Source: Malacoraja senta (taxonomy: Eukaryota). From it: a stretch of 64,000 nucleotides of DNA. The first letter of the stretch is position 1; each line of letters opens with the position of its first letter. The translations under genes were made by a program, and so were the position numbers. The notes beneath the pieces are model-generated. The model did no database searches and was not told where the DNA came from. It saw nothing but the letters and a program-made list of their open reading frames with translations. Of this stretch, positions 527 through 43,920 are shown piece by piece. The DNA lies in the NCBI GenBank assembly GCA_038087875.1, contig JAXLNO010001765.1, positions 124,001 through 188,000 on the forward strand, written 5' to 3'.

Positions 527-940
527 GTTGTGACCAAAGATTATAGAGGAGCAAGATAGACCACTCCTCCGAAATCCAATGGGCTGACGTGTCGTACGTA
601 ACGTCACGGCCGCCATTTGTTTAAGCCAAACGCGACTTCCGGTATGCCTCCTGCTGTGCACTCGCTCTATCATCCTTGGTGTAATAAGTGTTGTAGGGAA
701 CAGTGTTTGATATAGCGCATCTATCACCTCACATATTTTAATTAATTTTATTGTAAATGTTTTCCCCCTGTTCCCCCATTTCCCTCCCATCTTTTCTCCC
801 CAGCCGCCACCTTTGCTTAGTTTCCCTTACATTGTATTGTGCAGCTTCCCTTGTATTGTTTTAACACACACTGTGCACAAAATTAACTTTAACTTATATA
901 TATATTTATATGAATGTGTGTTTCTGTGTGTAAGAGGCAA

Positions 941-1140
941 GTTAAGGGCCTGTCCCCACCAGCATGCGATTGCATGCGTGTAGCGCGACCAAATGTGGTC
1001 GCTTGAAAAATCTTGCACTGTCCGAACATCCCGCGCGACAACGGCCTGTCGGCCTGCAGGCACATTGAGGGCGTACGCAGCGTCTTGATATCGTACGCGG
1101 CATCTTGACGGCGTATGCCTAACGCGTGGCGTTGTGTGAG
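941..1140. mobile_element. Partial Harbinger-like MITE nested in the P-like element
   Basis: Begins TTAAGGGCCTGTCCCCAC, similar to the AAGGGCCTGTCCCAC termini at 13786 and 31912; no right end seen. Confidence 0.45.
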
Positions 1141-1240
1141 AGTTGTTTTTTAAATGTGCTATATAAATAAAAGTGACTTGACTTGACTTGACATATTTCT
1201 CTAGTTTTTCTTCAGATTTCCTCTAATTTCTTCAGCAACC

Positions 1241-1520
1241 NNNNNNNNNNNNNNNNNNNNNNNNNNNNNNNNNNNNNNNNNNNNNNNNNNNNNNNNNNNN
1301 NNNNNNNNNNNNNNNNNNNNNNNNNNNNNNNNNNNNNNNNNNNNNNNNNNNNNNNNNNNNNNNNNNNNNNNNNNNNNNNNNNNNNNNNNNNNNNNNNNNN
1401 NNNNNNNNNNNNNNNNNNNNNNNNNNNNNNNNNNNNNNNNNNNNNNNNNNNNNNNNNNNNNNNNNNNNNNNNNNNNNNNNNNNNNNNNNNNNNNNNNNNN
1501 NNNNNNNNNNNNNNNNNNNA
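1241..1520. other. Assembly gap (280 N)
   Basis: Run of N. Confidence 1.
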
Positions 1521-2029
1521 TAATACATCCATGAACACAATGTCAAAATATGTTTCCATTCTTTCATTCTATATTAGCGTAACACAATGTAGTGCATACA
1601 TACCTACATATTTAAATTCAGTCGATAAGTTGGTCAAATAATATGGGGATCTTCTTGCTTTTTTTTGAGACATGGATTTTTTAAATATGAATGTCTCATA
1701 ACGACACATTTGTGGGTCAGCCCTATATTGCACTAACCACAATTTCAAATAACTCTAAATTGAACTATAAACAATGAAAACACTCTTTATTTCCGTCATT
1801 TACGGTAATATTTACATAATTCACATCATTTTGTGCACGACTTATACAGGGGGTTGCAGTGTTTTGAAAGTGATGTAAAATTCAACATATTTCAGACAAT
1901 GATAGCCCCACCCCTTGCTTACCCCAAAGAACAAAATTTCCAACTTATATACAATAATAAATAAATCGTCATTTGCACAATTTTGTGTGGGTAACGGGAG
2001 GTTCTCATTCTTCCTCTTGAGTTGGGAAA

Positions 2030-3213
2030 ACAGACGTTTCGGCGTGTTCGGGATATCAAATAGCATTGGAACTGCATTGCAATTTAGCCTGTCATTGGTC
2101 TGCCTGTTGGAAAACTAGTCAAGTTCAGTGTTCAGAACAAAAACGGCAGGTGGTTGACAAGTACACCAGAGTTTGGTGGTGGAGATCTTGTCGACGAGTA
2201 TTCTGGACCCGCTGTCGACATCTGAAATTACAGAAAATCTCATATTGGATTAACTAAGAAGGAAAAAATGTAGTTATAACTACATATCTGCAGAACGGAT
2301 GATATATCATTTAAGTGCAATTGTTCAGTTGTGGGGAGAGACCTGTATATTGAAGATGCATTTTGCCACTAATGTAGTAGAGATTATTTAAAACTTCTAA
2401 TGTAGACTATTTAAAGTATTTTCTTTCTATCCTCTTTTGGACCTAAGACACTAGCAGGACTACCAACTCTCAGGCAGAGACAGACAGAGAGAGAGGGGAG
2501 GAAGAGAGAGAAAGGCAGATGGGGCAAAGACCGAGATAGAGAGAGACAGGGAGAGGAGAGAGAGAGAGAAGGGGCAGAGAGAGACGGGGAGAGAGGGAGA
2601 GAGAGATGGAGGGGGCAGAGAGAGAAGGGGAGAGAGAGGAACGATGGAACGTTATAACGCACAGCCGTCCCATTTTGACCGCCGCCGAACCCCGCACCGC
2701 ACCATTGCACCCTTCTTCACGGCGGCCCAGCGATGTCTCGGCTCTGACAATTCGAGGGATCTAATCGGTAACTACACTAAGAGCAGCCCTGGGTCGCTGC
2801 GCTCCCCGACTCGAATCTGAGGTTAAAATCTTGTGATGGGCCTGATGTGTCTCTCTCCCCATCTCTCTCTGCCCCTTCTCTCTCTCTCTCCCTCTCTCCC
2901 TACGGACCATATTTTGGAGACTCCTGCCGTACAGAAACAAAAGAAAAATGTACAGAAGAACAAAAATTGCTGACTTTATTATTGTGGTGAGTTTAGATCT
3001 ATTAAAAAAAATCTAGTATCTTTCTAATGTACCAACAACCCTAGTTTTCCAATGAGTGTCAATAGGGGAACAAAAAATAACATTTTCAGGACAAAATGAT
3101 GTCGACAGAAAACAATAATATTTCCTCACCTTTCTTTGTTGTTGGGGAACCTGAAGAAAGACAGGTTGAGTTGTCAACATCGGTGATTAGAGCAATTTAG
3201 ATGTGGACGCCAT
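2030..3213 (-). pseudogene. Degenerate two-exon THAP zinc-finger gene (N-terminus of a transposase)
   Basis: Exon 1 (3213-3130): ATG, then frameshifted LNCSNHRC*QLNLSFFRFPNNKER, ending AG|GTGAGG. Exon 2 from 2221 after TTTCTGTAATTTCAG: CRQRVQNTRRQDLHHQTLVYLSTTCRFCSEH, frameshift, ELD*FSNRQTNDRLNCNAVPMLFDIPNTP. Shows the THAP FP..W(mutated), CSxH(F) and AVP motifs. Confidence 0.8.
2468..2640. repeat. GA-rich low-complexity/microsatellite tract
   Basis: (GA)n-like purine tract; a partial inverted CT-rich copy lies at about 2850-2900. Confidence 0.9.
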
Positions 3214-3330
3214 GACAGTATGCGGGCAGCCCTATAAAATGCCCTATAAAATGGCGTCGACAATCACACACGTCATACAACGCGTTTTTCGCTGAGTGGC
3301 GCATCTTGCTCTATAATCTTTGGTTGTGAC

Positions 3331-7625: not shown

Positions 7626-8369
7626 ATAATTTTTACCAAAGCAAATTAAAACCCTAGCGTCTTTGGCATGTTGGGGGAAACCGGAATACCTGGAGAAATC
7701 CCACAAAGGTCACGGGGAGAACGTAAAACTCCATACAGACAGCACTCATAGTGTGGATCGAACCTGGGTCTCTGGCGCTGTAAGGCAGCAGCTCTAACGT
7801 GGGCGACGTTTCGGTTCGGGACTCTCCTTCAGACTGAAAATAGAGGGGAGGGAATTGGAGGTAAGAATAGAATAGAAACATAGAAAATAGGTGCAGGAGT
7901 AGGCCATTCGACCCTTTGAGCCAGCACCGCCATTTAATATGATCATGGCTGATCATCCAGAATCAGTACCCTGTTCCTGATTTGTCCCCATATCCCTTGA
8001 TTCCATTAGCCCTAAGAGCTAAATCTAACTCTCTTAAACACACGGACCAATATAGAACAAATCAGGGCCAGCAACAGATGACCAAGGAAGGTTGGAGCCC
8101 ATAATGGCCCATTGTTGGCTGGGGAAGAGGTTTTAACGAAGGGATACAATTAACATTATTACCGACCCAAAACATTCCCTATCCATGTTCTCCAGAGATA
8201 CTGTCCCACTCAGATATTTTGTGTAGACCAGCATCTGCAATGGAGCAGTCTGAAGGGTCTCGACCCGAAACATCACCCATTCCTTCTATCCAGAGATGCT
8301 GTCTGACCTACTGCTGATGCTGATGTCCAGCATCAGCAGTTCTTTGTTTTCATATTCTCCCTTCTACCC

Positions 8370-11699: not shown

Positions 11700-11985
11700 A
11701 TACATCTTAGAATAAAGGGGAGGCCATTTAAGACTGAGGTGACAACAAACTTTTTCACCCAGAGAGTTGTGAATTTGTGGAATTCCCTGCCACAGAGGGC
11801 AGTGGAGGCCAAATCACTGGGTGGATTTAAGAGAGTTAGATAGAGCTCTAGGGGCTAGTGGAGTCAAGGGATATGGGGAGAAGGCAGGCACGGGTTATTG
11901 ATTGGGGACGATCAGTCATGATCACAATGAATGGCGGTGCTGGCTCGAAGGGCCGAATGGCCTCCTCCTGCACCTGTTGTCTATG
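11700..11985 (+). mobile_element. CR1 LINE 3' end fragment
   Basis: Same 3' UTR (GAATGGCGGTGCTGGCTCGAAGGGCCGAATGGCC...) as the long CR1 copies. Confidence 0.85.
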
Positions 11986-12184
11986 TTTCTATGATAACAA
12001 CTAAGCCACTCCTCTAGTAGGGAAACGCAAATGCAGCATCTATGGAGCGGAGGAAATAGGCAACGTTTCAGTCTGAAGAAGGGTTTGGGCCCGAAACGTT
12101 GCCTATTTCCTTCGCTCCATAGATGCTGCTGCACCCACTGAGTTTCTCCAGCATTGTTTACCTTCCATTTTCCAGCATCTGCAG

Positions 12185-12218
12185 CAAAGACACTAGAGGA
12201 TCCGCCATATAATCTTTG
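12185..12218. mobile_element. 34-bp P-like terminal remnant (candidate excision footprint) flanked by an 8-bp TSD
   Basis: ATCTGCAG (12177-12184) + CAAAGACACTAGAGGATCCGCCATATAATCTTTG + ATCTGCAG (12219-12226). The uninterrupted host repeat at about 13341-13365 has a single ATCTGCAG. Confidence 0.8.
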
Positions 12219-12436
12219 ATCTGCAGTTCCTTCTTCAACACTTTGTCCTTGAGTATCTTTGTTGTCCACAAAGGCGCTTCCGGCGCAAGGGGAGGGGATG
12301 GGACGGTTTAGGGCGGCGCACCGGCGCTGGCAACGTGGGACGGTGGGTGGAGGGCGTCCGGGTGGAGGGCGAAACGCCCAATGTTGCTTCCGGAGTGGGT
12401 TTGTGTTGTTGTTTGGTGTATTGAGGGTGGGATGGA

Positions 12437-21769: not shown

Positions 21770-23345
21770 TCCATGACTTTGCACAACTCAAGCTGTGGAA
21801 GCTCTACAGAGCTGTAGATGTTGTGTACATGGATTTCAGAAAGGTATTCGAAAAGGTAGCATGGTAGGCTGCTCTGGAAGATTTGATCACATGAGATCCA
21901 AGGAGAGATAGCTGAATGGATAGCAAATGGCTCCATGGAAGGAAGCAGAGGATGATGGTGGAAGGTTGCTTCACTGATTGGAGGCGTGTGACTAGTGGTG
22001 TGACTCAGGGTTCGGTGCTGGGCCCGTTACTGTTTGTCATCTACATAATTAGTTTGGATGATATAATTATCCAAGATTAGCGAGTTTGCTGATGATACAC
22101 AAGTGAGTGGTTTTGCAGATAGTGAAGATGGTTGTGAACGATTGCAGGTAGACAATGGTTGTGAACGATTGCAGCAGGATCTGGATCGATTGGCCAGTGG
22201 GCCGAGGAATGTTTGATGGAATTTAATACAGAGAAGTGTGATGTGTTGCTTTTTGGGACGTCTAACACAGTAAATGGTTGGTCTCTGGGGAGTGTTGAGA
22301 GGAGAGGGATCTAGGAGTACAAGTGCAAAGTTCCTTAAAGGTCGAGTCACAGGTAGATAAGGTGGTCAAAAAGGCTTTTGGCACATTGTCCTTCATCAGT
22401 CAGAATAATGAGTACAGAAGTTGGGAGGTCATGTTGCAGTCGTATAAGACGTTGGTGAGACCGCATTTAGAATATTGTGTTCAGTTCTGGGCACCATGTT
22501 ATAGGAAATATATTGTCAAGCTTGAAACTGGTCAGAAAATATTTACAAGGATGTTGCCAGGACTAGAGGGTGTGAGTTATAGGGAGAGGTTGAGTAGGCT
22601 GGGTCTCTATTCCTTGGAGCGCAGGAGGATGAGGGGTGATCTTGTAAGAGGTATACAAAATCATGAGAGGAATAGTTCGGGTAGATGCACAGAGTCTTTT
22701 GCCCAGAGTAGGGGAATCGAGGACCAGATGACATAGTTTCAAGGTCAATGGGAAAAGATTTAATAGGAATCCGAAGGGTGACTTTTTCACACAAAGGGTG
22801 GTGGGTGTATGGAACAAGCTCCCAGAGGAGGTAATTGAGGCTGGGACTATCCCCTCATTTAAGAAACAGTTAGACAGGTACATTAATATGACAGGTTTGG
22901 AGGGATATGGACCAAAGGCAGGCAGGTGGGACTAGTGTAGCTGGGACATGTTGGCCGGTGTGGACAAGTTGGGCTGAAGGGCCTGTTCCCATACTGTATC
23001 ACTCTATGACTCCATAACTAAACCAGGGGCCACAGTCTTAGAATAAAGGGGAGGTCATTTAAGATTGAGGTGAGAAAAATCTTTTTCACCCAGAGAGTTG
23101 TGAATTTATGGAATTCCCTGCCACAGAGGGCAGTGGAGGCCAAGTCACTGGATGGATTTAAGAGAGAGTTAGATAGAGCTCTAGGGGCTAGTGGAGTCAA
23201 GGGATATGGGGAGAAGGAAGGCACGGGTTATTGATAGGGGACGATCAGCCATGATCATAATGAATGGCGGTGCTGGCTCGAAGGGCCGAATGGCCTCTTC
23301 CTGCACCTATTTTCTATGTTTCTATGTTTCTATGTTTCTATGTTT
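21770..23345 (+). mobile_element. Degenerate CR1 3' region(s)
   Basis: YKTLVRPHLEYCVQFWAP, GLYSLERRRMRGDL, followed by two CR1 3' UTRs and (TCTATGTT)n tail. Confidence 0.85.
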
Positions 23346-43100: not shown

Positions 43101-43920
43101 CAGGGCCGGCCTTAGGAGGTGCGGGGCCCAATTGGGAAAAAATTTCGTAGAAATATAAATAAATAATTATAAATGAGTCAGTGAGTAACATGACAATTCG
43201 GGGGAGAGTTCCTTTCACAGCGTGTGGGGTCTAGCCAGGGGTAAAGTTGCGAGGAGGGAAGGAGCGTTGAGAAGGAGTGGGTCGGGTTCATGCCAGTAAC
43301 ACTCACCGCTGCCGCGGCGCTCCGGGCGCGGAGCCAGCACATTGTGGCCGGGGAGGGAAGCAGCTCGCGTGGCTACGAGCGGCCTCCATCACCGGACAGC
43401 GGAACTGACTGCCATCTCAGCACCTTCTGCCGGCCCGCTCACCTCTGGCAGTGCTCTCCGTCTGAACAGTGAGGGGACCAGCTCAAGAGCAAAGATCATA
43501 GAGCGGAGTGGGTCAGCGGGTGATGGATAACACCACAGCGGGCGGTGGAGCTTACTCCTGTGTCAGCGCGAACAAGGGATCAATTGAGGTTACTCGCCCT
43601 GACATATGGAGTAAGCTCCACCGCCCGCTGTCCTGTTATCCATCGCCCGCTGACCCGCTCTTGAGTTGGATGATCCCCGGCCGACCCCCACCTTCTCAAA
43701 CCTCTTGCCCTCCCCGCAACTTTACCCCTGGTCAGACTACCCACACGCTGTGAAATGAACTCTCTCCCCCCCCCCAGCAGCGCTGTCCTTTTACAGCCGC
43801 TTCCCACTTTACAGACGCTTCCCATCAGCTGCTAGCAATGAGGGATAGACTTGGCTATCCCTCAGTACAACAACATCGTTCTTGATGTTGCTGTACTGAG
43901 GGATAACGAAGTCTATCTTT
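43101..43920. mobile_element. hAT-like element end with internal fold-back palindrome
   Basis: Starts CAGGGCCGGCCTTAG. Inverted arms at 43201-43286/43681-43770 and 43510-43557/43609-43666. No matching right end or TSD found. Confidence 0.6.

Follow-up and report, generated by a model that had tools for sequence, protein, structure and literature searches.

In a 64,000-nt window of the Malacoraja senta genome (assembly GCA_038087875.1, contig JAXLNO010001765.1, positions 124,001-188,000, forward strand) we identified a 34-bp remnant that we think, with some reserve, is probably the fossil donor-site scar of a DNA transposon of the P superfamily, the group with THAP-domain transposases. The remnant lies at 12177-12226, a span that includes its flanking duplications. 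It is an insertion that bears a target-site duplication (TSD), its two tips are those of a transposon family present elsewhere in the window, homology to that family breaks off at nt 16-17, and the family is P-like. The staggered cut and the joining pathway that would have produced such a scar are proposed by analogy with Drosophila P. Because the layout TSD-17-17-TSD matches untrimmed joins at Drosophila P donor sites, we consider an excision footprint to be the best reading. The reading draws on a single locus, and the length of 34 bp could be a coincidence.

The remnant consists of a left TSD copy of 8 bp, ATCTGCAG, at 12177-12184; a left 17-mer, CAAAGACACTAGAGGAT, at 12185-12201 on the forward strand; a right 17-mer, CCGCCATATAATCTTTG, at 12202-12218, also given on the forward strand; and a right TSD copy, again ATCTGCAG, at 12219-12226. 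The duplication is perfect (8/8), and the letters agree exactly with the layout given in the initial annotation. The recipient is a SINE-like repeat (12040-12250, forward strand) that aligns with the other copies in the window at 94-96% identity, and the insertion lies in the tail of this repeat. It had been claimed that the host repeat carries a single 8-mer elsewhere, and the six other copies in the window bear this out: each has one ATCTGCAG, in the context ...CCAGCATCTGCAGTTCCTTC... Since these paralogues carry the 8-mer only once, 42 bp were gained at 12177-12226, namely the 34 bp and one duplicated 8-mer. Both TSD copies are thus kept in the remnant, in comparison with the single copy at the paralogous empty sites. 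Within the host repeat we also observed an internal inverted repeat (12040-12129 against 12122-12033, 82%), which forms a hairpin-like core common to the SINE copies.

A chance origin of this arrangement was ruled out by several scans. When all pairs of CAAAG and CTTTG up to 6 kb apart were collected from the whole window, perfect 8-bp direct repeats flanked only two of them, the 34-bp remnant and a 2788-bp element at 535-3322, against an estimated expectation of about 0.01. A family-blind scan of the 64 kb for inserts of 10-80 bp with a perfect 8-bp duplication and inverted tips of at least 5 bp returned the remnant alone (mean of 0.03 in 30 Markov-2 shuffles that served as the control). The remnant was again the only hit in a relaxed scan that accepted CAAA...TTTG tips and duplications of at least 7/8. 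One further candidate, a 29-bp CAAAG...CTTTG stretch at 7637-7665, was considered as a second remnant and rejected; its flanks match at 2/8 positions and its tips resemble the family no better than chance.

The remnant is also present in sequence obtained independently of the assembly. A 114-nt contig of run X16 spans 12173-12285, including the remnant and both flanks, with three differences from the window: C>G at 12206 (inside the remnant), T>C at 12250, and one more. The contigs of run X15 have C at 12206, as does the window. Because the remnant occurs in contigs of an independent run, it is no artefact of assembly, and two or more variants of its sequence exist. Among the runs queried, a word spanning the remnant was found in X15 only; many runs contain about 0.4 of the words sampled from the 737-nt stretch 11700-12436, a fraction that we read as the repeat part of that stretch. 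The contigs placed on 11900-12436 comprised remnant carriers and joints between paralogous SINE copies only, and among the joints listed for this interval there was neither an occupied allele with the full element nor a clean 42-bp skip. Two raw-read runs for the same interval yielded nothing from Malacoraja senta.

Two observations on these contigs and on the surroundings of the locus are recorded here. The contig depth over 12173-12285 in X15 and X16 exceeds by far that of several contigs nearby, and positions 12206 and 12250 vary; these depths are sums over contigs from runs whose type is not given, and are not readable as copy number. The locus may be transcribed or duplicated. Directly upstream of the host SINE, about 290 bp (11702-11993) belong to a different repeat family, being 93.9% identical to 23032-23326; this family has several further, more diverged copies in the window, and its contig depth in X15 and X16 is very high.

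The nearest full member of the family to which the tips belong is the 2788-bp element at 535-3322 (reverse strand, with a run of N at 1241-1519), a non-autonomous, P-superfamily-like element that starts with CAAAGATTATAGAGGAG and ends with TTGCTCTATAATCTTTG. Its TSD is GTTGTGAC, 8 bp, at 527-534 and 3323-3330. Local alignment of its two ends revealed terminal inverted repeats (TIRs) of about 30 bp, at 535-566 (forward strand, the transposase-distal end) and 3294-3322 (reverse strand, the THAP-proximal end), with 26 matches over 32/29 nt and one 3-nt gap.

A decayed THAP domain in this element is a new result of the present analysis. It reads inward on the reverse strand, starting about 110 bp from the 3322 end, and is split between two exons. 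Exon 1 (3130-3213) opens with an ATG (3213-3211), is broken by a frameshift near 3195 and by a stop at 3176-3174, is followed by a GT donor (3129-3128), and retains the residues ...C-S-N-H-R-C...LSFFRFPNNKER. Exon 2 (2055-2221) follows a cag acceptor at 2224-2222 and has stops at 2127-2125 and 2117-2115 with a frameshift between them; its residues include ...CRFCSEH..., in which CSEH is followed by the stop at 2127-2125, and ...RLNCNAVPMLFD, and it ends in ...NAVPMLFD. When the two decayed exons were joined with an X at each break (two to three stops and two frameshifts), the read-through matched Pfam PF05485 with E = 2.1e-9 and 38.4 bits (curated cut-off 23.9), over profile positions 5-87 of 87. 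Searched separately in Pfam, the THAP pieces gave no match; a PDB sequence search with one piece returned only a spurious zinc-finger match, and a homologous-protein search with the X-joined read-through returned no candidates.

Nine of the longest stop-free pieces of 535-3322 gave no match in Pfam to the catalytic domain of P transposases (Tnp_P_element or THAP9-like), which is RNase H-like and has a GTP-binding insertion (279 bp of the element are N), nor were hAT or BED domains found in its pieces. From its sequence, we regard the element as a deletion derivative in which the THAP domain is retained and the catalytic domain appears to be absent. No autonomous copy of the family lies within the 64-kb window. 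The combination of a THAP domain, an 8-bp TSD and TIRs of about 30 bp assigns the parent family to the P superfamily and not to hAT.

Between the two THAP exons lies a long CT/GA-rich tract of low complexity with internal inverted repeats (2440-2910), which is probably intron filler or a nested simple repeat. The subterminal regions of the element, at 570-640 and 3215-3290, have the motifs TGACGTGT and CGCCATTT in common, and the region on the 535 side contains CCAAT and CTTCCGG as well. We take these subterminal motifs to resemble the CRE, YY1 and ETS motifs of promoters. CCGCCAT is also present in the right half of the remnant.

We compared the two halves of the remnant with the ends of the family. 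A match of 13/17 to the ends of 535-3322 had been reported for both 17-mers, and it holds for each of them. Against the 535 end, the left half agrees over CAAAGA and, after three mismatches, over TAGAGGA. For the right half, taken as its reverse complement, 13/17 positions agree with either end of 535-3322, the terminal 11 nt exactly, and 14/17 agree with a solitary family end at 43490, positions 14-17 included. When the selected CAAAG/CTTTG tips are set aside, 8 of the remaining 12 positions still match in each half, for which we estimate a binomial probability of about 0.003 per half. Beyond these limits the resemblance ends: at nt 18-24 only 0-2 of 7 positions match in any comparison on either side (1/7 for the left half against the 535 end), the reference ends being relatives and not the source. 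The family homology therefore stops at nt 16-17 on both sides, the left half keeping the family end to nt 16-17 and the right half to nt 17.

The same comparisons bear on the identity of the source. The host repeat diverges from its paralogues by about 4-6%. Because the host copies are 94-96% identical and the TSDs are perfect, the 34 bp would be expected to differ by about one substitution at most, and from these two features the remnant itself would appear little decayed since its formation. The 4+4 mismatches to 535-3322 exceed this expectation; the 2788-bp element is therefore a relative of the source and not the source, and we rejected the idea that the remnant is a decayed footprint of that very copy. 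The two halves also match each other at only 9/17 positions, in contrast to the TIRs of 535-3322, which agree between themselves at 14/14 before their 3-nt indel. It follows that the source had unlike ends, or that the junction was altered by repair. No element with ends that match CAAAGACACTAGAGGAT and CCGCCATATAATCTTTG exactly was found, the sole full copy differing at four positions per half, and a search of the 64 kb at up to three mismatches returned, for either 17-mer, nothing besides the family ends. We note in addition that ACTAGAGGA, in the middle of the remnant, is the reverse complement of the 9-mer at 12010-12018; from its sequence the middle could be filler, but the estimated chance of such a match is about 0.1 and we give it little weight.

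The proposed history of the locus has three steps. In the first, a member of the family entered the tail of the SINE-like repeat and duplicated ATCTGCAG, an event to which the TSD and the paralogous empty sites attest. In the second, a later excision would have begun with transposase cuts of the 3' strand at the junctions of element and flank and, on the 5' strand, some 17 nt into the element, leaving on each flank a 3' overhang of about 17 nt of element sequence; we infer this step from the chemistry of Drosophila P and from the limit of homology at 16-17 nt on both sides. In the third, end joining of the two non-complementary overhangs, nearly untrimmed, would have given TSD-17-17-TSD. The source may have belonged to a subfamily other than that of the 535-3322 copy, or error-prone fill-in may have altered a few bases near the junction. 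Since the assembly and contigs of an independent run both carry the remnant, the event took place in the germ line or was made heritable.

Other cut-and-paste superfamilies are not known to leave long tips: excision of Tc1/mariner elements leaves 2-3 nt, and that of piggyBac none. The background of the Drosophila P element that was invoked for the locus, a 17-nt stagger followed by end joining, agrees with the literature. P transposase cuts the 5' strand 17 nt inside the element, and each donor flank is left with a 3' overhang of 17 nt, the two being non-complementary (PMC7776569, PMC2895639); between the TSDs, end joining then preserves as many as 17 nt from either side (PMC2895639, Table 2). 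A P{wa} donor site that has not been cut back reads TSD + CATGATGAAATAACATA + TATGTTATTTCATCATG + TSD; among recovered P{wa} junctions the retained length is 4-17 nt per side, and in some of them the full 17 nt are followed by a short insert and a further 16-17 nt (PMC2895639). Some junction types recur in that table, in up to five isolates. The claim of a fossil P-type scar gains from the P-like character of the parent family (THAP domain, 8-bp TSD and TIRs of about 30 bp) and from the limit of homology at nt 16-17; the 535-3322 copy is not the source.

An alternative origin, which we regard as unlikely but deserving of weight, is an extreme internal deletion of a full element in situ. It would have followed a transposase-induced break, with repair that copied the sister chromatid for a short way from each end (aborted synthesis-dependent strand annealing) and then end joining, or else a replication slip between short repeats; in both cases the tips alone would be left. 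Such deletions have ample precedent, since P-induced gaps in Drosophila mostly yield incomplete repair synthesis and then end joining (PMC2895639), and P-like copies with internal deletions are common both in flies (PMC7776569) and in zebrafish (PMC10983969). The 535-3322 element is itself a deletion derivative that kept its THAP domain and in which no catalytic domain was found. Tracts of repair synthesis commonly extend over hundreds of bases. The deletion model does not set both breakpoints at nt 16-17, whereas 34 bp that contain no sequence past nt 17 are what joining without synthesis is expected to leave. A mobile element of minimal size seems to us decidedly improbable. On this account a double-ended unit of 34 bp, which may have originated as a footprint at another site, transposed into the SINE tail and there made its own TSD, which would account for the perfect duplication and for the presence of both tips. 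Set against it are the lack of a second copy of either 17-mer within the 64-kb window at up to three mismatches, family ends aside, and the poor inverted repeats formed by the tips (9/17). Drosophila P, moreover, requires internal sites in cis. The fly element has internal transposase-binding sites and subterminal repeats well past the TIR (PMC7776569). That the 34-bp unit is a minimal substrate still mobilisable by the P-like transposase of the skate we consider more doubtful again; if it were, it would be the smallest cut-and-paste element known from a eukaryote, and the family would need just its tips of about 17 nt in cis, unlike Drosophila P. The initial annotation had proposed that many identical copies would refute a footprint. 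This criterion is not a clean one, and identical short units need not mean mobility, because P{wa} junction types recur in up to five isolates (PMC2895639).

The remaining alternative, that the locus derives from a hAT transposon, as a scar or as a mini-element, is very improbable. The hAT consensus is nTnnnnAn for the TSD (T2/A7) and YARNG for the tip, and hAT transposases carry BED fingers. Both TSDs in the window, GTTGTGAC and ATCTGCAG, fit nTnnnnAn, and CAAAG fits YARNG. The excision of hAT, MULE and Transib elements passes through hairpins on the flanks, and a hAT excision by that route would leave no long element tips. MULE transposition resembles that of hAT and Transib elements and V(D)J recombination (PMC5499845). 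The TSD pattern does not separate hAT from P, because the target motif of Drosophila P, ATRGTCCGGACWAT, has the same T2/A7 (PMC2577343). As 535-3322 encodes a THAP domain, and neither a BED nor a hAT domain was found in it, we rejected the hAT identity suggested by the TSD pattern.

Returning to the footprint reading, we compared the remnant with known systems. The fly P element has 31-bp TIRs, an 8-bp TSD and a THAP domain (PMC7776569). Its footprints in Drosophila melanogaster are like the skate remnant in that both 8-bp TSDs are kept with at most 17 nt of each TIR between them (PMC2895639), and unlike it in that they were induced experimentally, whereas the skate remnant is a fixed fossil in a vertebrate genome. 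The tips differ as well: those of fly P are perfect repeats and those of the skate remnant are unlike each other, and there is no sequence relation between the two sets beyond the initial CA. The stagger of about 17 nt is known from Drosophila P only, and its extension to the skate family would be by analogy.

Among vertebrates the nearest comparison is zebrafish Pdre2/THAP9, which likewise belongs to the P superfamily, encodes a transposase with a THAP domain, makes 8-bp TSDs and includes internally deleted copies (PMC10983969); it differs in its 13-bp TIRs, CATACCTGTCAAC, with distant 12-bp subterminal repeats, the skate copy having TIRs of about 30 bp and a CAAAG start. The portion of PMC10983969 drawn on here describes neither natural footprints nor a stagger length for Pdre2. 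Our search of the literature returned no work on cartilaginous fish that deals with P-like elements or with their footprints. The scar type is known from flies, and a fossil example from a vertebrate would be new. Miniature inverted-repeat elements (MITEs) are another point of comparison, and are generally multi-copy and tens to hundreds of bp long. The P-MITEs of Anopheles and BuT5 are non-autonomous and, like the remnant, keep both ends and an 8-bp TSD (PMC1562414, PMC3698922); BuT5 copies are about 1 kb long and numerous, unlike the remnant, which is 34 bp long, single in the window and has nothing past nt 17.

No feature of the Drosophila P transposase is odder than its 17-nt staggered cut. 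If about 17 nt per side proved to be the upper limit in many remnants of the skate family, this would be natural evidence, drawn from sequence only, that the chemistry has been conserved from flies to cartilaginous fish. Such a limit would also show that excision of P-like elements went on in the skate germ line after the spread of the host SINE family. Such scars would provide a count of past excisions, beyond that of insertions, across a vertebrate genome, and also a record of the germ-line joining of long non-complementary overhangs.

We also wish to point out the solitary family end, CAAAGATCATAGAGCGG, at 43490-43506 (forward strand). It lies in one arm of a palindromic repeat of about 190 bp (43470-43662): the left arm contains CAAAGATCATAGAG(CGG), and the right arm reads CTCAAGAGCGGGTCAGC, without the family end. 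The tip adjoins an AGAG/AGAGCGG microhomology with its flank, and the arms differ by 5 nt (AGTGG). Judged from these letters, the end at 43490 is possibly a second scar of the same family, one-sided and joined through microhomology.
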